Below are positions 11,100-63,097 of a DNA stretch of 64,000 bases, piece by piece. The stretch covers positions 62,001-126,000 of the forward strand of contig OU015569.1 in the NCBI GenBank assembly GCA_907165135.1. The letters run 5' to 3'. Both the position numbers and the translations under genes were made by a program. The notes under the pieces were generated by a model. That model searched no databases. It was not told the DNA's origin and saw nothing but the letters and a program-made list of their open reading frames with translations. Positions within the stretch are counted from its first letter, which is position 1; the number at the start of each line of letters is the position of its first letter. Origin of the DNA: Oikopleura dioica (lineage: Eukaryota; Animalia; Chordata).

Positions 11100-11519
11100 G
11101 GACGATAAAAATATATTTCCTGAGAAATTACAAAAAAGCGTGTTTTGACCCTTTTTGTTTCAAGCTTTTCGAGTACTATCAGTGCTCAAGTTTGCTTCAT
11201 AATATACCAATAGAAAGCTTAGAGCCTCTTCTAGGGGGATTTGAATTCAAAAAGAGAAATAATGGGCCTAAAAAATTATTTTGATACTATTTAGATACTT
11301 TACTTTGACGGTGATTAAAGGGTACTTCCGGCTTCATTTGTTAGTTCCACAATTTATTTTTTTCAATTTTCTATTCAAATCCCCCTAGAATAGGCTACGA
11401 GCTTTCTTTTGGTACATTATGAAGCATAGTTGAGCACTGATAGTACTCGAAAAGCTTGAAACAAAAAGGGTCAAAACACGCTATTTTGTAATTTCTCAGA
11501 AAATATATTTTTATCGTCC
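11100..11519. mobile_element. Foldback/MITE element with about 145-bp near-perfect terminal inverted repeats
   Basis: ggacgataaaaatatatttcctgagaaattac... is mirrored at ...gtaatttctcagaaaatatatttttatcgtcc. CAA flanks both ends (11097-11099 and 11520-11522), a possible 3-bp TSD. Confidence 0.85.
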
Positions 11520-12538: not shown

Positions 12539-12970
12539 GATTCACTTTTTTATTCATTTTTTATCGTTTTTGTAGCAACTCTGCGATGGGACTCGGCGCC
12601 GGAAAATTCGAGCATGTTGGTCCTCGAGGAACTTTCTAATAATTCCCCAAAATATATTTATTCTGCCCTTCGAGTTGCCAAGTTTTGATTTGTCGCGATT
12701 TGCAGTCGGATAAATCAACAATCGTCTAGTCTTTTTTTGCAAAAGAACTTTAGCAAGTTAGACAAGAGGCAGCCTTATTCCCAGCAGATGAATTTCAAGG
12801 CTGTCTCTCCGGAAATTTTAAGGAGCTTGCGTTTTACTCAAAGGAATGGAAATAACAGTCATAAACTGCCATTCGAAGGCTACGTCGGCCTTCAAACTAC
12901 AGTAATCTTTGTGACACAGTATTATTAACTTTCGATTGGAAAAGGCAGCTTCAGATGAGGAAGAAGGTGT

Positions 12971-13334
12971 TTTATTGGGGCGCCTGTTGGATGAGAGTGA
13001 TGTTGTCGCCCTTGAGCAGGATTCGTCCGACGTTTCGTTTGAAGTGAGTCTGGAAATCAAAGTTGAAGATGACTGTAAATAACTCTGGCATACCTTGACG
13101 TGCATTTCTTCGACGTCGTCGAGGACGAGGTTCATGTACTCGTCGAATCCAACGATCACTCCTTCAAGTCTCAAGTTGACGACGTCGTAGAGCCAGATCT
13201 GAGAGTCTTCTTCTTTCCATCATACGAATTTACGAGTGAAATACCTGGACGCGGATCTTCTTCTGGAAAAAGCGGAAAACGAGGTTGATGGGCTGAACCA
13301 TCACCTTCTGCACCTTGTGGCCGTAGCCCGACAT
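12971..13334 (-). CDS. SNRPE: Small nuclear ribonucleoprotein E
   Basis: [39 protein letters not shown] and [14 protein letters not shown] in three exons. Confidence 0.97.
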
Positions 13335-13520
13335 TCTGATCGAGCGATTTTCAAAATTCTGAAAAGAAAAATCGAACATCAAGAAAGTGTTTTTGGGCTT
13401 TTCTTTTTCTTTAATTGAACTTTAATTGAAAGTGGAAAATTGTGCATTTCATTGACTTTCAGGAAAAGACGGCGCTTCTTATTCTTCTATTTTTCTTTCG
13501 TTTCTTTCACTTTCCTTCGT

Positions 13521-16500
13521 CTAAAATCGCAAACTCTGGAACATTCTGGCGACGCACTGCGAGTCCTGCTCGCTTTGCCACGTCGCTGCTTTCACAGCCT
13601 CGGCGAGTGGCTTTCGAATGTTGCTCGCCGAGAGCAGGAGCGTCTTGTTGATGTCGCCCTCTGTGCAGTTTCCGACGATCGCCGTGCTGAACACTTTTTC
13701 GCAGCGCTTGACGATCTCGACTCGCTGCTCCGAGTGGCGGCAGACGAGATTGATTGCCAGCACGCCGCCTTCGCGCAGCCCGTTTTTCCACATTTCTAGC
13801 GACGATTCTGTGATGAACGGCTCAGGAGGACACCTAAAACACCTCTTTTAAGGGGAAACGATCGCTGCAAAAAGAGCCCAAATTCGACAGTGACGCTGTT
13901 CAAAGAAGAGGTTCTGTTTTTTTTTTCGGAAAAGGGCCCGTTAGAGTCGGGCGTAAAAAATTAGCTAAAAAACGCGTTATCTGTCGCCGGGGACACTCAA
14001 CCTCAGATTGCGGGACTTCCTTAGGCGGCGCCCTGGAAGCCCCGGTGCCTCCCCGAGGTCGGGAGGGTACACATGTGATGTGGGTTAGGGTTGAAAGAAA
14101 GAGGCCCTAGACGAAGTAGCAGCCCCAGAGAGCGCCCCGACGACTTTATGCATAATTAGATAAGTAGAGGAACGAGAAAGTTGGGCTTCTCAAGTTAGAA
14201 TCGAAATTATGGTGTTCGTTCAGCAAAGTTTGTTACCTCAAGGCAAGCGAGGGATCCTTCTGATCGACGTCCAAAATGATCAGATCGTATTGCTCCTTCC
14301 TTTCCTCCAAAAATTTAAGCCCGTCCGCGACGACGACGTTGCAGGTCTCCGGCAGATCAAAGTACACTCTCGCAATTTTCACCATGACGGGGTCGATTTC
14401 GACGGAAGTCAACGCGGCGGCCGGATATCGCGCTTCCAGGAAGTTCGACAAAACGCCGCCGCCAAGGCCGATTACCAGCACTTTCGGTTCTTTTACGTTC
14501 TTGGCGATCATGTCCAGCGCCGAGACGAGTCCGTAGTAGTACTCCGAAGCGACGTAGCTCTTGTCGAATATCCTTCTCAGTTTCTGAAAAGAGAATTGCT
14601 TCAATTCTCAAAGAAATATTTCGCACCGTTATTTTCTTTTTGCCTTTTTTGACGCGTTCAAACTCCATCTTTACTTTGCACTCTGACTGGACCAAAGTGG
14701 GCTGGTTCTTGAAAATGAGTCTTCTGTAGGCGCACTCGCTTCCGTCCTGCCCTCTCGCCTTCGACTCCTCGATGATGTACTCGCCGGAGAGTTCGCTTTT
14801 GCCGGAAGCGACGTAGCTCCTCGCCTGGTCCTCGCCCTCCGTCAAAAACGGAATCTGCCGGTCGTAGCATTTTCTGTGCTTGAGTTCTTTCACCAGCCAG
14901 GAGAGCTCTTCCTAAACCAAAACTAGAAAACAAAAGGAAATCTCTCTTACCAACCTTGACCTGATCGTTGTTTCCGTACGAGTGGACCATGTTCTTCAAA
15001 ACATAGACCATTCGCTTGAAACCGCCGCCTGTCATGTCTCTCAGCTCATTCAGAAACTGCTTTCGCCCTTGCGGACTACTGTAGCTCCAGTCGAACTCGC
15101 GCCCAGCCGCCACGATGAAAAAAGCCATGTCTCTCACTCCTCGGCTGTCGTCCACTACGTACAGGTCGAAGCGAGGCACGTCGCTGCCTTTGCTGTACAT
15201 CGAGAAATGCACTAAATAAGAATTACCTCTTTCTGTCGATCAATAGATAGAACGGATAGAAATAGAAAAAGAATTGGGCTGTTTACGAAGCCTAATTCTC
15301 TATTTGCGCGAAAGTAGGTTATCATAATTTATTTTGACGACAAAAATCGCATCTTTGCAAATATCCAACTGAGATTTTACTATGTTTACTAGCAAAAGTA
15401 GCGCCCTCGGCTGATTTTTGAGGTATAAAAAGGGAGCTTTGAGCTTTTTTATATCGAAAATAAAATAAAATGAAACTGAACCCGAAAACGAGGCAACAAT
15501 AATTTGTCGTACGAAGAAATGGTCTTCAAAAATTATGATGATATCGACAGAACGTACAATAAAAAATGAAACTGAAGCTGTAGTTCCGGGCAAGTGAAAA
15601 AGCTAAAAAAAATAAAATGAAAAATAAACTTCCACTAACAAAAAAGAAAGTAGATTTACCTTCTGACTGCAGCGTTCTCGAGACCAAGCCCTTGAGCTGG
15701 CTCCATTCTTGTCTGCTTTTGCAAAAGTCCGAGATTTCATCCGCGGTGTATGCTCTCATCGGTTTAGGGTTCGAGTGCGCTTCCACCGCTGGGAATATCT
15801 CCATCAGCTTGTCCGGAGCGGTTCCGTCCTTGTATCTCAATCTGGTGAGGACGATGACGAAGACGGGCAGTGGAATGACGCCGTCTTCGCTGCCCGAGGG
15901 AATGTGCTCGTGCAGGCGCAGCATCCAGCCTTTGCGCAGCTCGAATTCTTGCGCCACGAACTTGGCGATGTGTTCCTGCGCCAGAGTAATGAGGATGTAG
16001 CGCCCGCCAGACTTGAGCACGCGGCCGATTTCGTCGAACATCCGCGCGATCAGCTGACACGTCTCGTCGCTGTCGTCCACCATCATCGCGTCCAAGGTGC
16101 CTTTGTCGATCACGCAGTTGAATTGCTGGTCTCTTTCGCGGCTCAATCCCTTCAAATCTTCAATTTAAAGAACTCATGGAACACGACAGCCTGTGTCCGC
16201 ACTCCGGATCCTGAGTCAGGGCATCCTTTTTACTAAAGAAAGCCTGTGTTTTGAGCCCAGACCTGTACTTGAGTTCAGTAACATCGCCGACTTCGTAAAT
16301 CATCTGTCGCTTCGACTCTTCGGCCTTTTTCTGCATTCGTTTGATGACGTTTTCGGAGATGTCGATGTTGGTGATGAGTTTGCACTTCTGCCTGATCGAA
16401 TGAGAATTAACGCGCTTTCCGAAGAATCTGTCTTACATGTCGTGCAGCTCGTCGGAGAGTTCCGAATTGCCGCAGCCGACCATGAGGATTTCGTCTTCCG

Positions 16501-16858: not shown

Positions 16859-16975
16859 CTGAGCTCGCCAACCTGTGTAGAAAACCTGAGTCAGGGTCTG
16901 AAAGATCTTCAATGAAAAGCCAGCGGCTTCGCAAAATTACTTTTCAGACCCTGACTCAGGTTTTCCACACAGGCA
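16859..16975. mobile_element. Family A palindromic MITE copy
   Basis: aacctgtgtagaaaacctgagtcagggtctgaaa ... tttcagaccctgactcaggttttccacacagg. Confidence 0.85.
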
Positions 16976-17143
16976 GCCTAGCTGACCCAACAATTGATCC
17001 CAGCTTCAGTCCTTTTCTACAGTAATACGCATATTTTTCATTGTAACAATCCTTCAAATTTCATAACTGTTAACTCATAGTTGATAACTTATCAGTTTAT
17101 TTATTCAATAAAAAAGGGAAAAGGAGTAGAAACAGTGAAAAAA

Positions 17144-25328: not shown

Positions 25329-27926
25329 CTAAATCGAATTGGGGAAATTCGAAAGCGTTTGAATCTGAACCTGGGAGTCATGGCGGTTGTTGCGGTTGCC
25401 GTCTCGGAGCTCGGCGACTTTGTTGTAAATTTCGTGCTGGTCGATGTTGGCAGGGGCGCGCGGGTTGAAGCTGCGCGCTGGTAAAGGAGCGCAGAGCACG
25501 TGGATGCAGTTGGACGGACAGGAGCCGCGGGAAAACGGATTCTAGCAGTTGACTTTTCAATCATAATAACATAAGATAGCATATGTAATTGGCTGAGTAT
25601 CGGGAAGCCGCTTGCGGCTTCGAGCAAAAGAAAACTCAAGCCGCTCAATGCACAGCTTTTCCAACTTTTTATTTGCTCGAAGCCGCAAGCGGCTTCTTGA
25701 TTGTAAGGGTACGCTTTACGAAAAAGTTGAAGCTCTTACCCTGGCTGCTCTGTTCTTCTTCCACGATCCCTTGATGTCTTCATTGGTCGTGGTGTTGGTG
25801 GAGGTTAGGTAGGTGTGGAAACAAGTGAGGCCGACCACAGACCTGAAAAGTTTGCATTTAGCAATTTGTTATTCTGTGATTTTAAACTCCAGAAGAGGAA
25901 AAGACGTAAATTCCGACTTTGATTGACCTTAATGCTCGGCCTGGCATACGGCAGGACTGACTCGATCGATGCTAATGAGATGAACTCGAGAAACAACATT
26001 TTTTTCCAAAAAAAGAAAAAAAGTGAATAAAGCTAAATAAGCTATTTCCATGTCAGAGGAAGTTTTAAACATAGACGAACTTGGGAACTACGAAGTTGAA
26101 AATAGTGAAAATGAAGAGAGCGCTTTTTCGGATTTTATCAGGTCTGGCCGAATTTTTGGAAGGCGAAAAATGATTTCCCGTAAACTTGTCTTCAGAGAAA
26201 TTTCGGCACCGCTGGCAGTGGCGATTCCAGCCATTGCGGGGGTGCTCATCGCCTGCGTTATTCTTTTTTGCTACAAAGCCTTCATCGACAAAATGAACAC
26301 TCCGGTTGGCGGCTTCTCGATTATTTTAAATCAACAATAGTTGAATTCGTAAAGAAGCCGGTAAATAGAACACAAGCAACGCTAGCCGAACGCAGTCGGA
26401 CTTTCATTCGGATTCGAAGTCAACGAAAATACAGGTTTGAACTGAACTGGATAACCTGTGTAGAAAACCTGAGTCAGGGACCAGAAAGACATATGTTAGT
26501 ATCGGCGCTAACGGAAGCTTTGCGGCTTGATTTTTTTCAAAAGCCGCGTAAAAAAGCTTTTTCAGGACCCTGACTCAGGTTTTCGACGCAAGTTGCCGAA
26601 CCCAGATTTTAAGACCATTGCTAATTTTGAATAACTTTCAGTCTCAAATCTGACGAAGACCCTCTTTTAGCTAAAAAAACAACCCTTTCGTTTCTTTTAC
26701 TGGAACAGTCCTCGTTGTTTTCAAATAAAAATAAAACTCACCAAATTGAAAAGAAGCTAACGAATATTTCAAATGCGGAAGGCCAGGATTCTTGAAGCGC
26801 GGCGAGTATTTCTCCTTCGTACTTGTCCTTCGAGAGAATCATCAAGTTCATCAAGGAGCAGGAGAAGATTAATAAGCATAGGCACTAGAATCGGGTTTCG
26901 AATTTCGGGCAAACAAAACTTGAATTTAGCGCTATTCGATATCTGGTTGGCTCATTTGGTCAATCGAGCCTTTTGATTGGTCAAAATGAAGTACTTTTTA
27001 AAACCCGTGGCGAAAGTGAGGCGAGGAATAAATAGAAGTAGCGATAATTGCGGCGGCCGATGCAGTTTCCAACCTAAATTTCACAGATTCTCTCAAGAAG
27101 AAGATGAAGAGTAGCTCACCCATGGGCAGTGATGATCGAATCTGTCGACGCAGTTGTCGCAAATCGAGCAGTGGGAAGACCGTGGCGGGCGGAAGATTTT
27201 GCAAGTGAAGCAGTATTTCTGCTTCATCGTCACTCCGTTGATTTCGATCTCTTGCACGCGCGGCTAAACAGAAATTTGAAGTAATTTCGAGGCGTGGTTT
27301 TGAATTACCGGTGGTTTGTAGCCAGTGTAGCCGTTTTTGCGCACGTCGGCGTCGATCAGTTGGCGCTCGACTTGCGCGCTTTGGGAAGAGGAAGCTCGTG
27401 GAATTATGCCTGGGTCAGAAAACGAAGTCCGGAACAACATCAGCATCACGAAGAAGTAGAGCAGCAGACAGGCGAAGAGCATGTACACGCCGTACTAAAT
27501 GGAATTGTCAGATTGTGGTCACAATCAAGAACTGCATTTGCCTCCTATTTAACGAAGTAAAACCCTTATTTTCTTCCACCAGCAAGCGGGTTCTCTAGTT
27601 ATAAGATGGAGAAAAATAAGGGTGTTACTTTGTTAACTTTGAAAACTGCAAAAGAGAACTGATCAATCAAAAATTGAGTTTCACCGACCGGTTGATCGCG
27701 AAGAGTAATGCGGTAGTCGTTGAAGAGGAAGAGTCCAGTCGTCAAGCTAATAAGAGATGCTGTGATGCACAAGACGGTCTTGTCGTTCGCCGTGATCAGC
27801 CGCCCGTCGCAGTAGAACGTGTTCTTCCCCGGAAACACTTCCCATGCCTGAAACGAGCGAATAAAATTCCAACTTTTCAAAGTAGACTGTTCTTACTTTT
27901 CTGGGCGCTCGTTTGGATGGCTTCAT
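25329..27926 (-). CDS. ZDHHC9: DHHC palmitoyltransferase, ZDHHC9/14/18 group
   Basis: [75 protein letters not shown] and NPFSRG. Confidence 0.9.
25604..25696. repeat. Family C palindrome (AAGCCGC/GCGGCTT modules)
   Basis: gaagccgcttgcggcttcgagcaaa ... tttgctcgaagccgcaagcggcttc, a perfect 25-bp inverted repeat inside a ZDHHC9 intron. Confidence 0.8.
26050..26340 (+). CDS. Possible small single-pass membrane protein nested antisense in a ZDHHC9 intron
   Basis: Acidic N-terminus, a 54-nt in-frame GT-AG candidate intron (26142-26195), then the hydrophobic helix [21 protein letters not shown] followed by K. The 3' end is unclear. Confidence 0.4.
   Translation: MSEEVLNIDELGNYEVENSENEESAFSDFIRSGRIFGRRKMISRKLVFREISAPLAVAIPAIAGVLIACVILFCYKAFIDKMNTPVGGFSIILNQQ
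26442..26605. mobile_element. Family A MITE copy
   Basis: Inverted CCTGAGTCAGGG arms with an AAGCCGC-containing spacer, in ZDHHC9 intron 25843-26741. Confidence 0.8.
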
Positions 27927-28410: not shown

Positions 28411-28530
28411 CTGGGCTCGAAAACCTGTGTGGAAACCTGAGTCAGGGTCCTGAAAGAGCAGATTTTTAAAAATACAATGGTTATCTTTCAGCACCCTTAC
28501 TCAGGTTTCTACGCAGGGTTCTGAGCCCAG
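28411..28530. mobile_element. Family A MITE copy with 8-bp TSD GGCAGTGA
   Basis: ggcagtga at 28403-28410 and 28531-28538 flanks ctgggctcg...gagcccag. Confidence 0.9.
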
Positions 28531-28565: not shown

Positions 28566-30558
28566 TCAATCCTTCTTGAATTGGTTGATTTTCTCCAATT
28601 TCGAAAAGCTGGCAAATACGCCGCATTGGAAGAGGAAGTCGTTGAGCTTGTCGAAGACGAAGGCGAAAACTGAAGACATAGAAGACTAACAAAAAAGAAT
28701 TGTGATGCTACCTGTGAAAAACGCCATGTATTGAATAAATCTATATTTAATCGAGCTCCAAGTACTGGCTTCGCGCTGGACGGACATGGTGGCCAATTCA
28801 TAATTCACTGTAACTTTATGTTAGAAACGCACTAATACTCGCAAGGTTGACTAATAACTGTACTTAGAACAATGCGTTCTAGAAGCACGAACATAAAGAA
28901 GAATAAAAAGGATTAAACTCTAATCTCGTAATTTAAACGAGAGCTGAGCTCGAGAACCTGCGTGAAAACCTGAGTCAGGGTCTCGAAAGAGTTTCATGTA
29001 GAGCCGCGTAGCGGCTATTTTTCAATAACGAGACCGCAAAGCGGCTTCGCCAAAATAATCATCTCTATCTCTTTTGAATCGTTCAGGACCCTGACTCAGG
29101 TTTCTACACAGGATTTCGCTCTTATGTTTACTTTTGCAGTGAATTTTTGACCACTAGAAAGTCCTACTTGTAAGCTGAAAAGAGCCGTCTGAGCCAGCAG
29201 TCCAGCGGGTTTGATGATGTGACTCGTCGAATCTGATGTTTCTCCTTGTTTGATTCTTCAACGCTTCTTCTCCGTTCCAAAGAGAAGGAGAAACGGATGG
29301 GAGAAAAGCAGGCGAGATGTTTACTCCTTTGGCAGGCAGCAGGGCGCTAAGAGTTTGTAGAATAAAATTGATAATAAGATATTGTATAATAGATTGAAAT
29401 GGTACTATTTGAAGCAAAGCTCTTTTTGATCCTGACTCAGGCTTGCTACACAGGTTTCCGAGCCCTGCTGAGAAGACTGCTTCGATGAGTGATTGATGCT
29501 AATAAATTACCTATTTGGATGTTCTCTTGAAGTGGCGAATTGGTTTAGGCGAATGTGAGAATTCGTTTCGGCACTTATCGACGGGTTGTTTGAATAGTCA
29601 GACGTAAGAATAAGTTGATTGATAAATTCGCTCTCTTTTGAGAAGCCAGGCATTTTCATTTTCAGGTAGCTGTACAGCTCGAAACCGATCACATCTCCGA
29701 CTGAGCACGAGTAGGAGACCTGAAACGACGATGAAAATTTCGCGCTTCTTAATTCGGTTAATTCGGATTCATTTTATTATTAAAATAAAAGGCCGAAATA
29801 TATAAGCCGAAAATCTTGAAAACGAGACTTTTTGCGGCTTCAAGATTTTGCGGCTTAGAAGTTAGAATTATTCGAGTGGCGCTAACCTCTTATTTCAATA
29901 ATAATATAGATCCAAAAAAGTATTCTCTAGTGTAGTAGCTTGCCTTAATTCTGGAGAGGTAGCTGTAATCAGGCTGGATGGTGGTTGAGCAAAGAGCTCT
30001 GTCACTCAAATCAGCCAAGTCTGCGACGCCAGGGGAATAGATTACACTTTCTCCTCAAAACAGCGATACACAATTTTTCATCTTCAAGAAAAAATAATGT
30101 GTGGAATTGTGGATTTCCGTTCCTGAAAAAGTGTGAAGAAGGAGGACTGATTCTTTGGAGTGCTGAAGTTCCGGAGCGACGAAATCGGTCGTTATCGAGG
30201 AATTGACCTGGTCCACGTGATAGATGATCAGCAGTGGCAAGACCAAGACCACAAGAAAGCCAATGATCAGGTACAGAAGCGGAAACGAGAGACCTTGAAT
30301 GAAGAGTAGAAAAAGGACCTCCAAAAGCAAAATTGTTTATTTTCTTCAAATTTAGTCGAAAATTGAACTTTCTAGTAAAAAAAAAAGTCGACCAATATTT
30401 GAAAAAGTCGATATTTTTTGTCGAAAAGTCGAAGTTTTAGTCAAAAATGTCAGGATTTTGGTCCGAAAATTCAGAATTTTCGTCGTTTCTTTATACAAAA
30501 AATTACCTTTTGAATACGAAAAATGATTAATCTTCAAATTCCTCCTCCAGAGCAGCAT
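28566..30558 (-). CDS. Putative type II membrane protein of unknown function (multi-exon)
   Basis: Long N-terminal hydrophobic segment (30330-30240), then several open exon-like blocks with GT/AG edges, ending FVFDKLNDFLFQCG...KKD*. No family recognised; the start is uncertain. Confidence 0.45.
28946..29121. mobile_element. Family A MITE copy
   Basis: Inverted CCTGAGTCAGGG arms; the spacer contains gagccgc/gcggct modules. Confidence 0.8.
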
Positions 30559-33420: not shown

Positions 33421-36400
33421 ATGTTGAAAGCAATCAGAGAGGGCTGGGACAAGCTCTGGGAGAGGCTGCTTCAGGACAACGGAAAGCTGCTGCATGTTGT
33501 TGGTGACTTGATAGTCAGGCTTATTGCTGCTTACCTCGGTAAGAAATCGAAGCGAGTTTTTACGAAGTTTTTCCTCATTTGCAGTCGCTAAGATGGTTTC
33601 TTGTAGCGTATGAAAGCACAATGCTGACTATGAAGTTTATGCAATCGCAGCTGATGGATGCTGACAAGACTCGTGCTGCGGAAATATTGGAGAAAATGGG
33701 CTACAGCGAAAAATTCGCGGCCGATTTTTTGCGCTCTGCTCCGAGACACGAATGGGCCGTGATCGAACACTTTGTCACCGACTCCGACGAGCTGAACGAC
33801 ATGGCGGCGGTGAAAGGGCTCAAGAAGGAAAAAGAAACGATCAACAGGAATCTGAAGTTCGCTCTGAATGTCGCCGCCAATCCCGACTTTGCGAAGCTCG
33901 TCAAGGTCACACAAGGACTGCTGATGTATGGACACGGTTGAATATTGGCCCTTAAGTCTTGCTCTGCTTGAGAGAGAATTCTGATAAATGATAATTTGAA
34001 ATTTAATTTTAAAAAAATCGAAGATAAAATCTAAGCTGGCAGTAAAAGTATATTTTTTTAGTTAGTAGCGACTTGCTACTAGCGAGCTTTGTCGCTGTCT
34101 AATTAAGGCTGCCTCTCTCTCTCTTTATAGCCTTTTTGTTTGTGCAAAATCTACTGTTATAAAAAAAAAGAAGAAAAAAGAAAGAAAGTAATATTCATGC
34201 GTGATTAGACCTCCGGGATGCGGGAAAACAATGCTCGCCAGGGCGATTGCAAGAGAAGCTGGCTTTAATTTTCTCGTCGTCCAGCCCAGTTTAGTCAATT
34301 CGAAATGGATCGGCGAGTCAGAGAAGTTCATCCAGGTCAGAATAAAATTCTCTTATTCGGGAGACACTGAATTGTGCCGCCCTGCGCCGCCCTGCGCCGC
34401 TCTGCGCCGCCCTGCGCCGCCCTGCGCCGCCCAGCGTCGCCCGGTCTCGCTGTATCCGAAGATATTTTGTCTTTCAAAAGCTGGAAATTTAGATTTTCAT
34501 GTTAACTTAGTTATTCTGACATATTTATATTGTCTTAAAATTAAATAAAGGTAAACCTATAATTTAGGGTGCCAGTACAGTAATTCTCAACCAAACTCAG
34601 ATTTTGGCATAAAATCACTTATTTATTGAGCACGCGACGGGCCAAAGGCCCTTACGCGCGCATTTTCTGGTAAAGAACTCATTGGGTTGGCGGGGCCCAA
34701 CTCTCGCTCTTGTTCAGAATTGTTTCTTAGGTCATGGTTGGGTCGGATGAGAGCCGGATGGTTTCGGACCGGGCGACGCTGGGCGGCGCAGGGCGGCGCA
34801 GGGCGGCGCAAGGCGGCGCAGGGCGGCGCAGAGCGGCACAATTCAGTACCCCCCTCTTATTCTTTCCCTTCATTCATTGAAACAGGCGTTTTTCTCTGTC
34901 GCGAAAAAGCTTGCTCCAACGGTGATTTTCGTCGACGAAATCGACGTTTTCCTCGGCAACCGCAACGACGAAAGCTTCCACGAGCACACGCAAATCAAGA
35001 TTGCCGAGTTTCTCACTGCCTGGGACGGCTTCGATCAGAACAAGGGAGCCCCAGTCGTCGTAATCGGCGCGACAAACAGAAAAGACACTCTTGATGAGGC
35101 TATTCTCCGCCGCCTCCCCATCAAAGTAAGTCAATTTGCTAATAGAGAGAAATCTTTTAATTTCCAATCTTTCTCCAAAGATTCGCCAAAATTATTATTT
35201 TAAGTTTTTTTTAAACATGAATACATGTAAGTAGTAAATTATGAGAAACTAAATTTATTAATTTCTGAAGCTGGGTAATTTACGTGGCTGGATAGTTGTA
35301 TTGACATGAATGTCGATTGTTATCACCTTGTTTGATTGTTCGAGTGTCTTTGTCGATAAAGGTCATTGTGAGAGAGTGGGTGGTTGTAACCATGTCCGGC
35401 TCATGAAATCTCAGAGTAAATCAATTGTTGGATTATCCGCGCTTGATCCTCAAAAAAACGACTCAATGAGAATCAAAATGACTCAACTCAACTATCTCTT
35501 TTCAAAGTCACTTTTAACTTTTTCTAGCTAGAGCACTTTAGAGCCAGTTTTTCGACTTTCACCACAGAGAGAAATTTTATTGACATTAATCTCAATTTCA
35601 GTCAATGATTAGTAGATGCTTTTATGACAAGAAGAAGTCGAGATATTGTGGCTTCGAGTTATCAAAAAAAAAGCCGCTCATTGTGCGGCTTCTCGTTTTT
35701 TTCGTCAGAGGAAAAGTAGATCTACTAGAAGTAGAGTAATGTCCCCAGGGAAGGGTTGCTTTATGATCGGAAGGGGAGCGAGCATAAATTACCCTAGGAT
35801 TGGGCTATTGTATCGATTAGGTGGAGATTCCTCTTCCCAACTCGGAGACCATCCGGCAGATTATCGAGAGCAAACTTCCCAAAGAAGACTTCGACGTCAA
35901 ATTCGACTTTGTCCAGCTGATCGAAAAAATGAACAACTGGGATTGCTCTAAAGTACACAACTTCGTCCAGGTAACTTTTTTGCTTTTTCGAAAAATGGAA
36001 TTTCAAATTGGTGATCACGTGGGAAGAGAAAAGGGCATTTAAGCCGCCCTGTAGGGGTCGATTAATCCTTTTTGTGCTCTCACCTTTTGAAAATGGCCGA
36101 GTCATGAGTCATGATCAATTTAAAGATTTTAAACTTCAGTTCGCCGTTACCTCTGCTGTCCACGAGTTCGTCGAGGAGAGAAGCCAGAAGTTGAAATTAG
36201 GAGAAAGCCTCAGTGATTACGTTCACACGGCGCTCCAGAAGGAAATCAAGCAAATTATCATTTCTGGTCAAACAAGCGAAGAAGCTACGAAGGGAGAGGA
36301 AACAAGCAGTCCTTCAAAAGTGAACTCTCGTTCTTCAGAAGTTAAAGTAAAGAAGGAAACATCTGCTTCTCTAGGTTAGTTTTTGATTTCATCGAAAAGC

Positions 36401-46522: not shown

Positions 46523-46771
46523 CTAAGACCCATCACGATTCATTCTTACCTATTCTCCTCTTCTCTCCATCCACCATCCCCAAAAAGTCACCTGCTGCGC
46601 CCCTCGACCTCACTTATTCTTCCTTCCACTAATCGATCTCGCTCTTCTTGCCATATTTCTCACTCACTCATTTCTCCCTTCTGTCGTTGCCATATCTGTA
46701 AATTCGGCATTTGCCCTACTTAAAAAATAGAAAGAAAAATAAAAGAAATTAATCTTAAATTTGCTCAGAAA

Positions 46772-46867
46772 CCTGAGCAGAAAACTTGAGTCAAGGTCCG
46801 AATGATCTTTATGGAAAGCCGCATTCGGACCCTGACTCAGGTTTTCTACACAGGTTGAGGAGCCCAG
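46772..46867. mobile_element. Family A MITE copy (degenerate left arm)
   Basis: aaaacttgagtcaaggtccg ... cggaccctgactcaggttttctacacaggttgaggagcccag. Confidence 0.75.
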
Positions 46868-48636: not shown

Positions 48637-49798
48637 CTAGGCATTGAATTTGGGTTCGTTTGAGAGCCGCCAGGAGATGAAAATCAGTGAGATCTGCAAA
48701 ACGGCTAACCCGACAGCAGCTCCGGCGATGATGGCGATGTTGCTCGTCAAAAACGACTCCACCTTTTCAAAAGAGAAGTTAGAAGAAGGTTTATTTTGAG
48801 TTGGAAAACCGAGTTTTTGCATCCAATAGTTTGGATATCGTCTTCGATATTTTCCGCCGAGTAAATTAACCCGCAGCCGAATTCATTTACGTCGCAGCAA
48901 GAGTCTTTTTCTCAGATTTTTAACTCGAATTATTTGTGGCCAAAAATTGGTCAGATCTTCAGATTTTTCGAATCAAAAAATCTTTCCTGGGACTAAAATC
49001 TGGGCTCGGCAACCTGTCTAGAAAACCTGAGTCAGGGTCTGAAAAATCTTCAATGATGGATTTTCAGACCCTGACTCAGGTTTTCCACACAGGTTGTCGA
49101 GCCCGGCCTGGAATCGCTGTCAGATTGTAGCTCTGTGTCGACAGCCACAACTGCATGTCTTCTACGTACTGCGGAAAGCCGGAAGAAGTGGCATTATTCC
49201 AATCGGTGTAATTGTTGAACCCGCAGCAATTGAACTCTTCTTGCAAAACCTGCCACGCGACGGCGGTCGGATTTCTCTCTTCAAAACACTTTAATTCCTA
49301 ACTCATATTTTTCCAAAAACCTAAAGACCAAGAACCATCGTCCGAAAGAACTTCGATTTCCCAGTCTTCATTTATTGAGTCCAAAGCTTCGTCGTTGAGG
49401 ATTTTCGTGATGTTGTCTTTTTTGACGTACGCGGCGATGCCACAAGACAGCTCCAGAATTACAAGTAGGATCTTAAAAACAGAATCAAAATTGGACAATT
49501 CTTCAATGCCCGCTTACAAGAATGATACTGTAGAATCGTTGAAAGAACTTGGCACACCCTCCGTCAGAATTAAGTGAGAGCAATCCAATCAACGAAATGA
49601 GCGAAACAAACGCCCCAATGACAATGATCGCGATTGGAATTGCATCGTAACTGTCAGTTGTCAAATCGGTAAAGTCGGAAAACTTCGACAAAAGATCCCT
49701 CCGAAAACGGCGACGGTGATTCCAGCAGCGAGAAAAATGAAGTTGGAAAAGCCAGCGAGGATTTTCAAAAAAACAAAGCAGCAGTCGCCTGCTCCCAT
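48637..49798 (-). CDS. Tetraspanin
   Basis: Four hydrophobic segments, CCG motif (FNCCGFNNYTDW), PDSCC and GC before TM4. There is an apparent 1-nt frameshift at a T4 run (49690-49693). Confidence 0.88.
49000..49106. mobile_element. Family A MITE copy at the 5' splice site of a tetraspanin intron
   Basis: Full ctgggctcggcaacc...ggttgtcgagcccgg copy. On the minus strand it begins one base after the exon end. Confidence 0.88.
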
Positions 49799-53303: not shown

Positions 53304-57355
<4,052 letters not shown>

Positions 57356-57930: not shown

Positions 57931-60402
57931 CTAGAACAGGAACTTGGGATCCCAGTCTTCGGGGTGGAAGCCAAACGACGTGTACTTTTTATACAAGACA
58001 GACTGGATGAACGCGAACAGCTCCATTTCGTAGCGCAGCGAATCCATCGCCAATTCCTGGCGCAAGTGTTGCGACAGCTGCGGCTTTTCTAGCGTTCGAG
58101 TCGAGTTGATGACTTCTTGCACGTCTGAAATCTCGATTTACGAATTGAAAGAAAGGGAAAGTTGCTTTCCCTGAGCGCGGCAACCTGTGTGGAAAACCTG
58201 AGTCAGGGTCTGAAAGAAAGCCGCGAAAGATCCTTCAGACCCTGACTCAGGTTTTCCACACAGGTTGCTGAGCCCAATGTCTTTCGACTTTTACCTTGTT
58301 CTCTAAAGACACCCAAAACGCCGCTAAAAAACTGCGGCAGCGTGTGCTCCAGAAGTCGCAAACTTTCTTCAATTTTCTCCAAAGTCCCAACTAAAAAGAA
58401 TCATCAACAATCAGCATCAAACGATTTCGACAAGAATCGTTACCGATGTAATATTCTTTGAGGAGGCGGATTTTCGCCATTTCCAGCGCTAACCTCTTCT
58501 TTTGATAATTCTGTTGGTTAGCTTTGCATATCTCGTGGTTTCCGCAAATGAACTTTCGGCGGTGATATTTTTTTAATACTTTGCATAAACGAGAAAATAG
58601 GGTGTGCCTTGTTGATTCTCTAAACTTCTGCAAATGCACCCTTGTTCATCCAGAAAGGCTACGTGGCCGAAGGATCAACAAGGGGACATTTGCACGAGTT
58701 TTGAGGCTCATCAAGGCCACCCCGGCCTTTAAAATCATTAAGCACCGTTCCTCGATGTATTCGATATCTGGTGTTTTGCATTCAGGCCGTTTCGCGCGAA
58801 CACACTCCTCCAGCGTCATCTTCAAATCGTGCTCCGACATGTCCTGGCACTCCTTGCCCTTGTAGTCTGGCTTTCTTTCCCAGCCATTCCGACTAATAAA
58901 CTATTTTAGCTTCTTTTCAAATAATTTCTAAAGCAAACCAGAAGTAGTACTCGCTGGCGAACCAGTCGACCGGGTTTCGAACGATGTTGATTACAGTCGG
59001 CGTTTTTAAATGATACCTAAAAAGTGCAAAAATGATCAGCTGAAAATCGAGAAGCCGCCATTTTTGCGGCTTCGAGATCAATAAAAAATTTAACCGCACT
59101 TAGCGTGGCTTTTTCTTCTGTTCGACTCGAAGCCGCAAGCGGCTTTTCGATTTTCAGCTGATCATGAAAACTCATGAAAACTCACTTGGTAAAGTTCATC
59201 CAAAAGTGATGCTTCATAATCGCCATTGGGGGCTTGAAATTGCCACGAATTTTATTCACAAGAACAAGATCCTAAACAAAAGAACATAAAGTCCCGAAGT
59301 TCAAGTTGCCCCTCTCACCTGATCACGTGTTCCAGGCTCGTAGACGTCCATAAATGTGAATTTGTTGACGACGGAGAGTTTGTGCAGCAGCTTTTGGAAC
59401 ATGGTCGAACCGCATTTCGGCATCTTGTTGTGGAAGATGAAGCGTTGATTTACAGGCGGTTCGCTCCAGTCCTTTTTTTCGTTCAGGAAATTTTTTTTAC
59501 AAAAATATGAAAATCCTTTTTATAAGAAAAATTCGGAACGGTTCCTTTTCTTTGAAGAGCGTCTCGGCCGTTTCGACTTTGAAGTCAAACTGCGGCTTGT
59601 TTGGATCTTCCACCGCTACGTATTGTCGCTGCCCGTTGGGAGCCACGGGTGCAGCGCTTTCTGTCGGCTTCTCAGGCTCAGCTGGCGGCTCTTGTGGCTC
59701 CACAGCTGCTGCTGGTTCTGGCGCGACGGGCGCAGCTTCTGAACTCTCTTTTTAATCCCCGACTTTTTCAGGACCCTGACTCAGAAAGAGGCTGTTTAAT
59801 CATCATCGATCAACATTTCAAATGTTACTCGCCTTGCATGATCGGGGCGACTTTCGGAATGTCTGGCGGCTGTGGAATCTCCACGACGGGCTTGGCAGGG
59901 ATGGAAGGCGCGCTAAGAGGCACTTTTGGCTTGTCGAGGCCGTGGAAGCGACCACCGAACACTGGCGGCGTCATCGCTTGCAGCCGCTTCGTGAAGTTCC
60001 AGCCATTGTAGGGCTTGAAGTAGTAGAGGTTGGCGCCGATCAGCAGACTCAGAATCACCACCACGAGCTTCACGTCGTTCCAATCGCGCGAGCTTTTTAC
60101 GATTCACAAAATTATTCTTTCTTTTTAGCCAAAATTATGGTATTGACACCCTTATTTCTTTTGTAAAATTATAATCTAATTCGTATATCTAAAAAATAGA
60201 CCGACTTAGATCATAAATTAAGGGAGTCACTATATTAAAAACAAAAAAAAAATAAACAGTATGAAAAAGTTGAAGAAAAAATCTTGTTTTTTCATTTTAA
60301 AATTAAATTTTTTATTATAAAATTTTAATTGAAATATTTTTTTGAGAACCAATAACTTGAATATCTGAGCGGAACGACTCTGTGTCGTTTTATCCGTCCC
60401 AT
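57931..60402 (-). CDS. Uronyl/heparan-sulfate 2-O-sulfotransferase-like protein
   Basis: Type II anchor, Pro-rich stem, FIFHNKMPKCGST, INIVRNPVDWFASEYY, MTLEECV and FICGNHEIC. The start may lie further upstream. Confidence 0.85.
58175..58276. mobile_element. Family A MITE copy
   Basis: ggcaacctgtgtggaaaacctgagtcagggtctgaa ... ttcagaccctgactcaggttttccacacaggttgc. Confidence 0.88.
58607..58716. mobile_element. Family B inverted-repeat element
   Basis: ccttgttgattctctaaacttctgcaaatgcacccttgttcatcc is mirrored by ggatcaacaaggggacatttgcacgagttttgaggctcatcaagg; inside GA-AG intron 58553-58750. Confidence 0.72.
59032..59165. mobile_element. Family C inverted-repeat element
   Basis: atgatcagctgaaaatcgagaagccgc ... 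gcggcttttcgattttcagctgatcat; fills most of a roughly 170-nt intron. Confidence 0.82.
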
Positions 60403-61279: not shown

Positions 61280-63097
61280 CATTGAGAACCTTATAATAGA
61301 GTGGCAAGGGCTAAAAACAAAAGTTGAAGAACGATCATTAAAACTGACGCTGCAAAACGAGCTGTACGAAATGTCCTTTCAGCTGTCAAATGCGACTGAG
61401 AAAATTGAAAATTTGGAAAAAAGTAATTTTGAGAATTTGGAGCAACATCACGAGCAGATGAAATTGGACTTGAAAAATGTGGCTTCTGTTTTTGAAAAAT
61501 TGCTGACAATCAAAGAAAAAGTGCGGAAAGACGTGAGGGAAATTCGCGGCGCGAAAGGAAGAGCTGAAAGGAGTGAAAAGGAGTGCGAAGAGAGCGCTCC
61601 ATGTTCTGGACCTTCAAGACGAATTTGCAAGATTCCGGCGAGAGCGATGAAGTCTTGCGACGAATTGGCGCAGAATGAGAAGATTCCAAAGGACCCGGCT
61701 CGGCAAACTGTGTAGAAAACCTGAGTCAGGGACGGAAAGATCAAAAATGATCCGTCAGACCCTGACTCAGGTTTTCTACACAGGTTGCCGAGCCAAGCCA
61801 AAGGAGGGCTCGCCAATTCTGTTAAAAATTGACGAAAAACTTCCGACAAAGCTTGCTTTTTGCCATTCCGACGGCAGGAAAAAGAGTCATTTAGATTTTA
61901 ATTCATTAAGGGTGTCAACCGATTTTCAGACAAGTTTTGAAAAAAGATTTGGAGTCCTTATGAGCTAAATAAAAAGATATTAATTGGTCGAATCATAAAA
62001 GAGACCCTTATTCGATCGTTGTTGACACCCTTAAGGACCCTCTTACTTCAATAATGACTTGATAAAGATTGGTAATTCAGGTATTTTAATTCACCGAAAA
62101 TTCGAAATTGCAAGAAATCATTCATTTTGAAGAACCGTTTCAGTGGAGGGGGAATGAGCTTTGATCGGACATGGGAAAGAGTCGTCAAAGTTTTTCCAAT
62201 TAAGTTTTATTCTGAATTAAAAAATGGTAATTATTGGGCGACTCGCGCGAATTGACAGAATACGCAAATGGCTTCGGCGCTGGCTTCGATTTTGAAAAGT
62301 GCGAAAAAGGCGAGTTCTGGATCGGAAACACCTTTTTGAACAAATTGACGGAAGGCGGCGTGAAACAACTCGGCGTGAAACTCAAGAGAGAAAATGGCGA
62401 AGTTGCCGCGCTCTCGTATAAAGAAACTTATATATTGAGGCTTTCCAGATTGAAAATAGAGCCCAATTTCGGGCCCCATAAAATGGGGACCCCATATTTT
62501 ACATTTTTCCAGCTGGAAAGCCTTTTTATATCCGACGAAAACGACTTGTTCCGACTAAGACTTGGAAGATCCAAAGTTGAATGTGGCTCTGCTCCGGACT
62601 CTTTGCGGGTACGATCATCTGGGAAATGAGAACAGTTGAATTTATTTAGTTCTTGTTCAGGGAGATTCTTACAGTTCAAATTATAACGCTCGAAACATCG
62701 CAAAAACCAACCACGACGGCATGTTCTTTTCGGCCTGGGACAGCGACAACGACTATTTCTCCGGCAACTGCGCAGGTAATTACTCAGGAACCTGTGCAGA
62801 AACCTGAGTCAGGGTCTGAAATATTATTAATTAAAATTTAAAGATTTTTCATACCCTGACTCAGGATTTCTGCACAGGTTTCCGTACATTTGAAATTCAG
62901 AAATCGAAAAATCTGGCTGGTGGTTCAATCGCTGCTCAGCTGCAAATCTCAACGCGCCGATGTGGAACTCGAGCGAAAACGGCATCTATCCGCCGGACGG
63001 TGTCAACTGGCAGAGCTTCAGCGGGCTTCAGAACCAGAGCTTGATCGAGACAGAATTGTCGCTTCTTCCAACTGGCGCTCATTTTTCTTTCTGTTAA
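61280..63097 (+). CDS. Coiled-coil plus fibrinogen-related domain protein (angiopoietin-like architecture)
   Basis: Coiled coil, then ILKNRFSGGGMSFDRTW, YANGFG, EFWIGN, HDGMFFSAWDSDND...NCA and GWWFNRCSAANLN. The 5' end was not located. Confidence 0.82.
61694..61797. mobile_element. Family A MITE copy with 8-bp TSD CCAAAGGA, inside coding sequence
   Basis: ccaaagga at 61686-61693 and 61798-61805. Confidence 0.92.
61910..62030. mobile_element. TTAA-flanked MITE with GGGTGTCAAC TIRs (Kolobok-like ends)
   Basis: ttaa|gggtgtcaac ... gttgacaccc|ttaa. Confidence 0.7.
62787..62883. mobile_element. Family A MITE copy filling most of intron 62777-62899
   Basis: ggaacctgtgcagaaacctgagtcagggtctgaaa ... 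taccctgactcaggatttctgcacaggtttcc. Confidence 0.82.

Follow-up and report, generated by a model that had tools for sequence, protein, structure and literature searches.

The 64,000-nucleotide (nt) stretch of Oikopleura dioica DNA analysed here (contig OU015569.1, positions 62,001 to 126,000; hereafter the window, with positions counted from its first letter) carries on its minus strand a METTL13 homologue, whose two C-terminal exons flank a 403-nt intron running from 14236 (GT) to 13834 (AG), and this intron encloses the strongly folded element that is the subject of this report. The exons join as ...DPSLALR to CPPEPF... (DVDQKDPSLALR to CPPEPFITESSLEMWKNGL), and RNA reads of a related lineage, with loose ends at 13835, were spliced at this position. 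The spliced C-terminal domain of a relative (P0002, 67–74% identical) matched the human METTL13 structure 5WCJ with an E value of 4.5e-24. The core of the element forms an island of 57–61% GC, while the intron flanks and the other introns of the METTL13 homologue are far less GC-rich. A sequence-only reading of the window had proposed that the intron encodes a telomerase RNA, and all of the motifs on which it drew were present in the 403-nt intron on the minus strand. They are given below with the other features of the locus.

13834..14236, minus strand: host intron, with GT at 14236-14235 and AG at 13835-13834, from sequence and reading frame
14187-14178 with 13884-13875, minus strand: outer 10-nt inverted repeat, AGCCCAACTT / AATTTGGGCT, 90% complementary
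13917..14144, minus strand: conserved core, candidate RNA body, 228 nt, ~60% GC
13983..14144, minus strand: domain 1, a long irregular closing stem, extended inward, capping a four-hairpin multi-branch junction
14144-14130 with 13998-13983, minus strand: closing helix, GTCGTCGGGGCGCTC / GAGTGTCCCCGGCGAC, with arms of 15 and 16 nt
14103-14093, minus strand: pyrimidine-rich linker, CTCTTTCTTTC
14082..14092, minus strand: telomere-complementary 11-mer, AACCCTAACCC, complement of 1.8 TTAGGG repeats
14066-14061 / 14053-14048, minus strand: hairpin CCCTCC/GGGAGG, from sequence
14060-14055 with 14004-13999, minus strand: putative pseudoknot pairing of the loop GACCTC with GAGGTT, duplex −6.7 kcal/mol
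14043-14035 / 14020-14012, minus strand: hairpin GGGGCTTCC/GGAAGTCCC, from sequence
13885..13986, minus strand: domain 2, with a helix of 13986-13970 with 13901-13885, from the consensus fold of four population sequences
Within domain 2, minus strand: T6 runs at 13972-13967 and 13960-13955, GCCCG hairpin at 13952-13936, A-run at 13926-13917 and variable spacer at 13916-13902, from sequence
13977..13982, minus strand: AGATAA, putative H box, present and inside the predicted domain 2 helix
13952-13948 / 13940-13936, minus strand: GCCCG/CGGGC hairpin with a 7-nt loop, from sequence
13917-13915 and 13899-13897, minus strand: ACA trinucleotides, from sequence
13863..13899, minus strand: 3' piece found in extra copies; contigs of X3, X4 and X5 align there only and then continue as TGGAGAT(C/T)TTCGT..., at 2–6 times the exon depth

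The predicted fold of domain 1 (162 nt) had a minimum free energy (MFE) of −76.1 kcal/mol and a z of −3.6, none of 200 shuffled sequences being as stable; the MFE structure had a frequency of 0.085 in the predicted ensemble. The antisense strand, in contrast, reached −65.6 kcal/mol with a z of −1.4, suggesting that the structure belongs to the host sense strand, and several G-U pairs in the stems of domain 1 were consistent with a sense-strand RNA fold. In the predicted ensemble, CCCUA (14090-14086) within the 11-mer was paired with UAGGG (14109-14105) at a probability of ~0.9; freeing the whole 11-mer from pairing would cost a predicted ~4 kcal/mol, and no helix abuts it. The pairing of GACCTC with GAGGTT, which had been put forward as a possible pseudoknot, can indeed form, but in the MFE fold GAGGUU was taken up by the extended closing stem instead. 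Domain 2 is predicted to close through the arms CGACAG.A.AACGCGUU (13986-13970) and GAAC.AGCG.U.CUGUCG (13901-13885), in a helix of ~15 bp that contains both AGATAA and the ACA at 13899-13897; the sole polymorphism within this helix, 13891 A/G, leaves the pair as U-A or U-G. The outer inverted repeat brackets both folded domains, and its pairing would join the two ends of the intron.

Eight marine metagenome contigs, ~98% identical to the window, were reached from the exon protein (P0001); of these, L001, L002 and L004 span the full intron and L007 covers part of it. The window, L001, L002 and L004 were identical throughout the 228-nt core (14144-13917), while their intron flanks held 10 single-nucleotide polymorphism sites and a six-column indel in 175 nt; across all six sequences, the 92-nt 5' intron flank alone had 16 variable sites. 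Thirteen variable sites were expected in the core against none seen (Poisson P 2e-6, Fisher P 2e-4), and variation resumed one base beyond each core end (14145 and 13916). Because variable sites lie directly at both edges, the invariance cannot be put down to a recent sweep or insertion. The conservation of the core exceeded that of the neighbouring METTL13 coding sequence, its unpaired segments were as invariant as its stems, and the 11-mer AACCCTAACCC was invariant across all population contigs.

The copy number of the element was examined by comparing the contigs of three DNA runs with positions 13500–14700 at 80% likeness. The exons of X4 and X5 each lay on one contig, at depths of ~85–91 and 48–49, respectively, whereas the summed depth over 13869–14155 was 164–478 in X4 and 104–308 in X5, i.e., 2–5.5 times the exon depth. 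Many short contigs over this stretch were 85–95% alike, and some entered unrelated flanks at 14138/14139, 13917/13920 and 13863. The core depth above that of the exons, together with these unrelated flanks, pointed to a low-copy dispersed family. An apparent break at 14149 was, by its flanks, a diverged version of the METTL13-intron locus or a longer duplicate. From these contigs, at least two further copies, and probably three or four, would lie elsewhere in the genome; within the 64-kb window, no second copy was found.

The paralogs differed from the window at informative places. Their 5' arm read GCCGCC or GTCGCT against GTCGTC in the window and their 3' arm GGCGGC against GGCGAC, so that GCCGCC...GGCGGC would keep the closing helix by a two-sided change if the arms share one paralog. 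Most paralog contigs had GGATAA for AGATAA (plus-strand 13982 T>C), the first T6 run was replaced by TTATTT, and four changes were clustered just 3' of the 11-mer (14080, 14077, 14073 and 14072); among the paralog differences listed, apart from 23 lesser ones, none fell in the 11-mer or in the 50 nt preceding it. In the paralog flanks, domain 1 was preceded at 16 nt by GTAAGA or GCAAGT, and ...TTTTCGCAG lay downstream, followed by GC-rich, exon-like sequence; as far as flanks of 30 nt can tell, this suggests that the other copies form nearly whole introns. The flank of the extra copies of 13863-13899 was likewise exon-like and unrelated. One paralog flank 3' of the A-run has CCTCTTGTTT, which resembles CCTCTTCTTTG in the spacer of the window, and this likeness, together with the occurrence of 13863-13899 in extra copies, indicates that the A-run is probably internal rather than a retroposition tail. 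A retroposon reading, drawn from paralogs that diverge at the A-run, was weakened in the same way, as homology seems to resume past the variable spacer (CCTCTTSTTT..., 13863-13899). Wider searches were negative: JGI metagenome contigs gave no match to an exact 20-mer around the template, nor to a degenerate search with the stop-free 82-residue frame of the core (13862-14107, plus strand); viral contigs gave two matches that shared just a 21-mer, as expected by chance, and no match to a second pattern; and protein-style searches with the stop-free core frame for mis-called open reading frames (ORFs) of paralog contigs returned no candidates.

Several splice-like motifs were also observed in the METTL13 intron. 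The branch-site-like word CTAAC occurs three times on the minus strand (14195-14199, 14084-14088 and 13942-13946), one copy lying inside the telomere-like 11-mer and another in the loop of the GCCCG hairpin (ACTCTAAC). A second strong acceptor-like motif, ...CTCTTTTTGCAG, lies at 13865-13867 on the minus strand, 31 nt 5' of the productive acceptor; splicing there would produce a frameshift and a stop, and in at least one paralog exon-like sequence directly follows the motif.

The orthologous intron of a sister lineage was reached through the last-exon protein, which led to the genomic sequences L017–L019 (two Logan assemblies of public DRR runs and the KAGO19 metagenome). Their exons were 76% identical to those of the window and had an intron at the identical codon position, of 41 nt (GTGAGT...TTTTGAAG); the core found no match in L017–L019, and the 41-nt intron held no trace of the element. 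The sequence-only reading had looked to the orthologous intron of divergent assemblies for an invariant template and covarying stems, and here this intron lacked the element altogether. The occurrence of a 41-nt sister intron at the same site indicated that the 403-nt intron is derived; the element, with some extra flank, would then have been inserted in the lineage of the window, loss from the other lineage being less simple. A 4-nt CGAT target duplication, considered from the comparison with the 41-nt intron, was too short, and the sequences too diverged, to be claimed.

Other METTL13 relatives were uninformative: no intron interrupts this site in the distant relative P0004 (43% identity), the match P0005 was bacterial, L009 was a spliced transcript, and a search of 1.84 billion representatives with the exon added no other close relative. 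In the sister lineage, a Tara contig (L010, 411-612) was seen to leave the METTL13 exon 38 nt early and to continue as GTGAGA with at least 200 nt of AT-rich sequence, while the cDNA L009 and the genomic L017–L019, of the same lineage, read straight through this departure point; L010 either is chimeric or carries a polymorphic insertion or a new intron. As for expression, the intron stretch was found in none of the indexed RNA runs, and an oligo-dT RNA run of a divergent lineage, which covered 50 nt of exon, was uninformative on the intron.

The conservation, the strand-specific folding and the invariant loops together suggested that a functional sense-strand RNA is the best reading of the METTL13-intron copy, while the extra copies with other flanks and the 41-nt sister intron suggested a mobile or duplicating element. 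We therefore favour, over a telomerase RNA, a mobile, intron-borne structured RNA element that is under purifying selection for some other function, although our confidence in this account is evenly balanced. The core would be one copy of a small dispersed family of strongly folded elements of ~230–300 nt, comprising the main copy and at least two paralogs. The METTL13 copy would have entered a formerly tiny intron, in sense orientation and in the lineage of the window only, and would since have been kept almost unchanged by purifying selection. Transcribed within the METTL13 pre-mRNA, the element would fold into two adjacent long hairpin domains, which may also pull the splice sites of the oversized intron together, and would persist as a stable RNA; such survival, we propose, would account for the conservation of loops and linkers and not of stems alone. 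Transposition or duplication would place new copies in other introns. We infer in this scheme the production of a stable RNA, the way in which the element moves and its function, whereas the fold with its strand bias, the conserved core, the additional copies and the lineage-specific occurrence are observations. The telomere-like 11-mer would then belong to the sequence of the family and be a putative template only. Intron gain has been proposed to proceed by transposon insertion and by intron transposition, and Oikopleura events have been tabulated for these mechanisms (PMC3443670).

Several points weigh against a mobile RNA element of other function. The paralogs are contig fragments with 30-nt loose ends, which makes the boundaries of the family, its copy number and its host sites approximate, and the matching 5' and 3' arms may come from different paralogs. 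Contigs that may represent the main locus differed from the window at 2 of 201 (X5) and up to 4 of 141 (X4) core positions; the conservation of the core is thus very strong but not absolute. The absence of a target-site duplication, of a tRNA-like head and of an Rfam match means that the element fits no defined class of transposon or RNA. Further, invariance over 228 nt exceeds what a selfish or purely structural element needs and points to a sequence-specific RNA function, for which a telomerase RNA is the most specific candidate.

That processing of the METTL13 intron releases the telomerase RNA of this Oikopleura lineage, or one of its functional copies, is possible but rather unlikely in our judgement. 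Domain 1 would then be the template/pseudoknot (T-PK) core in a P1-like helix, AACCCUAACCC a 6+5 template for TTAGGG, and the other copies pseudogenes or extra genes left by hopping between host introns. The word itself speaks for this possibility, being an exact 11-mer on the sense strand, invariant in the population contigs and suited to a 6-nt template with a 5-nt alignment site; its 1.8 repeats, complementary to TTAGGG, exceed the minimum of 1.3 that is required of an animal template on the transcribed strand. It occurs once in the window, where the expectation for the exact word is 0.02; its chance in 228 nt of one strand is ~3e-4. Counting all six registers and both strands, recomputation gave ~0.18 per 64 kb, in agreement with the earlier estimate of about 0.2; the same calculation gives ~190 chance 11-mers per 65-Mb genome, a genome rich in folded repeats, which counts against the word as a diagnostic. 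The word is preceded by GGCC and a pyrimidine-rich linker of ~10 nt. The human template region is likewise preceded by GGCC and a pyrimidine-rich linker of ~10 nt. The loops were strongly conserved alongside the stems, the closed core layout agrees with the universal T-PK design (PMC8480181), and the telomere repeat of O. dioica is TTAGGG (PMC8008620), as a telomerase reading requires. A telomerase RNA must exist in this genome, and, as had been supposed for appendicularians, none has been reported for any tunicate in the literature searched: an animal-wide survey makes no mention of tunicates (PMC8480181), and the Didemnum genome paper states that homology searches failed to find telomerase RNA in Didemnum and other tunicates (PMC8704543).

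The element, at 228 nt, shows only part of the known architecture of animal telomerase RNAs, which are defined by T-PK, CR4/5 and box H/ACA and in vertebrates measure 312–559 nt (PMC8480181). As the sequence-only reading had already conceded, no canonical triple helix and no CR4/5 or P6.1 element was recognised in the element; the 6-bp loop pairing has no U- or A-rich strands, GAGGUU is engaged by the closing stem in the MFE fold, and no second TERT-binding domain was recognised, although the GCCCG hairpin with its 7-nt loop (13952-13936) could be a CR4/5 equivalent. The proposed template proved intact, on the sense strand and in the 6+5 layout, yet about half of it (five of 11 bases) is predicted to be paired. 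The H/ACA domain that had been claimed did not hold up: paralogs carry an altered H box, L001 has ATA in place of the ACA at 13917-13915, and the predicted 15-bp helix takes in the second ACA together with the H box. Rfam searches at gathering thresholds over the whole window, and at E values up to 10 over 701 nt, gave one spurious long non-coding RNA (E 3.3), with no match of the element to the telomerase, snoRNA, RNase P/MRP, SRP, vault or ribozyme families; the lack of a telomerase match is weak evidence, because telomerase RNAs diverge fast. A resemblance to RNase MRP/P CR-I (GGAAGUCCC) and to 7SL words was considered but, having no Rfam support, was dropped.

The dispersed, multi-copy nature of the family also tells against a telomerase RNA, as does the lack of synteny, the sister-lineage intron being without the element. 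The latter is not fatal, because nematode telomerase RNA, which as previously noted is intron-encoded, lies in an nmy-2 intron into which it is inferred to have moved within Caenorhabditis (PMC12921731). Telomerase RNA paralogs have, in addition, been reported in bees, and lepidopteran telomerase RNAs are described as tiny and without key domains (PMC11892584). Of the telomerase claim as a whole, there remained a folded, conserved element on the sense strand that carries an intact 6+5 template-like word. That it represents the first tunicate telomerase RNA, compact (~230 nt), processed from an intron, hopping between introns and having lost canonical H/ACA and CR4/5, is accordingly a tentative proposal, which we regard as doubtful.

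A neutral non-autonomous mobile element resembling a miniature inverted-repeat transposable element (MITE) or a short interspersed nuclear element (SINE), or a transposed intron, without a function of its own, appears improbable. Its terminal inverted repeats would in this case form the closing helix, and the family would carry the 11-mer either by chance or from a telomere. Extra copies with different flanks, the lineage-specific insertion, the nested inverted repeats, the many palindromic MITEs of the window and the genome-wide abundance of chance 11-mers would all be explained. The absence of variable sites where ~13 were expected would not, since polymorphism at the edges excludes a recent sweep, and the strand asymmetry of the fold is unexpected for inverted repeats of DNA. 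The hallmarks of these classes were also missing. No target-site duplication adjoined the helix arms (ATAAA against AGATA, and in paralogs AAAAC against GGATA), and neither a tRNA-like head or structure nor a C/D box pair was found in the element, within which the two T6 runs lie. Unlike in a MITE, homology among the copies extends past both arms and the copies are few; unlike in a SINE, the A-run (13926-13917) is followed by the spacer and by the multi-copy 13899-13863.

Retroposition is known to carry snoRNA families from one intron to another. A pseudouridylation guide RNA of the intronic H/ACA type (an atypical snoRNA or scaRNA), which the sequence-only reading had kept as its alternative, would fit an intron-hosted element in sense orientation with AGATAA after domain 1, then a short GC hairpin with flanking internal loops and then ACA, but it is highly improbable, as the 160-nt multi-branch 5' domain is unlike an H/ACA hairpin, paralogs have GGATAA in place of the H box, the ACA at 13917-13915 is lost in L001 behind an A-run of varying length, the ACA at 13899-13897 sits 17 nt past the sole stem that could be closed and within a predicted helix, and no Rfam snoRNA family matched.

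The 64-kb window is itself rich in palindromic MITE-like elements. At least eight copies of one such family of ~100 nt, with arms such as GGCTCGGCAACCTGTGTAGAAAACCTGAGTCAGGGTCTGAAA, were located by an inverted-repeat search:

16862-16983: palindromic MITE-like copy
26453-26594: palindromic MITE-like copy
28411-28530: palindromic MITE-like copy
28944-29118: palindromic MITE-like copy
46763-46863: palindromic MITE-like copy
49002-49104: palindromic MITE-like copy
58172-58276: palindromic MITE-like copy
61697-61794: palindromic MITE-like copy

Three larger inverted repeats were also observed. The longest in the window, at 11100-11519, has 164-nt arms that are 90% complementary and 92 nt apart; that at 34359-34854 has 88-nt arms of tandem 10-mers (CTGCGCCGCC)n, 320 nt apart; and that at 54380-54762 is of the foldback type, built of tandem ATGTCCCC(G/A)A units. 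Directly 3' of METTL13, on the minus strand at 12818-13382, ORFs with Sm/LSm-like peptides probably represent a gene for a small Sm-fold protein with tiny introns.

If the element were a telomerase RNA, the sister group of vertebrates would no longer lack one, and a chordate would be shown to have a mobile, intron-borne telomerase RNA of radically reduced form; the element would also provide a second, independent case of intron "hitchhiking" as in nematodes; reverse transcription past the template boundary would then leave GGGTTAGGGTT followed by GAAAGAAAGAGG. Even if it is not, a lineage-specific insertion has made a 41-nt intron ten times as long, in a genome where tiny introns are selected for, and this insertion is more tightly conserved than the neighbouring exons. 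The element thus offers an entry point to the questions of how mobile intronic elements become functional RNAs and how Oikopleura tolerates large introns.

Among known systems, the element shares with vertebrate TERC (Rfam Telomerase-vert) a TTAGGG 6+5 template-like word inside a closing helix, a pyrimidine-rich linker before this word and a possible pairing of a loop with downstream sequence. It differs from TERC in its lack of canonical H/ACA, CR4/5/P6.1, a triple-helix pseudoknot and an Rfam match, and also in its length of ~228 nt, in its intronic position where TERC is an independent gene, in its several copies and in its lack of synteny in the sister lineage. Nematode terc-1 in nmy-2 (Takeda et al. 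2025, cited in PMC12921731) is similar in that it lies on the sense strand in an intron of a protein-coding gene, in a host intron not conserved in related lineages and with no evident upstream promoter of its own. Unlike the element, terc-1 is described as keeping H/ACA-type boxes and as thought to be processed like intronic H/ACA snoRNAs (PMC12921731); it has experimental support, while the METTL13-intron element is known here from its sequence.

Compared with oikopleurid MITEs and SINEs, the element is likewise short, non-coding and dispersed, with inverted-repeat arms and an internal A-run. Unlike them, it has no target-site duplication beside its arms and lacks both a tRNA-like head and A/B boxes; its copies remain homologous past the arms, T6 runs lie inside the unit, and the METTL13 copy is strongly conserved. 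Introner-like elements and transposed introns (fungal introner-like elements; Oikopleura cases, PMC3443670) resemble it in several respects, being longer than the ordinary introns of the genome, stable in predicted structure, lineage-specific and present as several similar copies in unrelated genes; the splice-site-like flanks of the paralogs (GTAAGA / GCAAGT and ...TTTTCGCAG) add to this likeness. The element differs from them in its very low copy number, and the METTL13 copy lies inside a larger intron and is not the source of the splice sites used. Finally, whereas introner-like elements are described as decaying (PMC3609843), the METTL13-intron element is under strong purifying selection.

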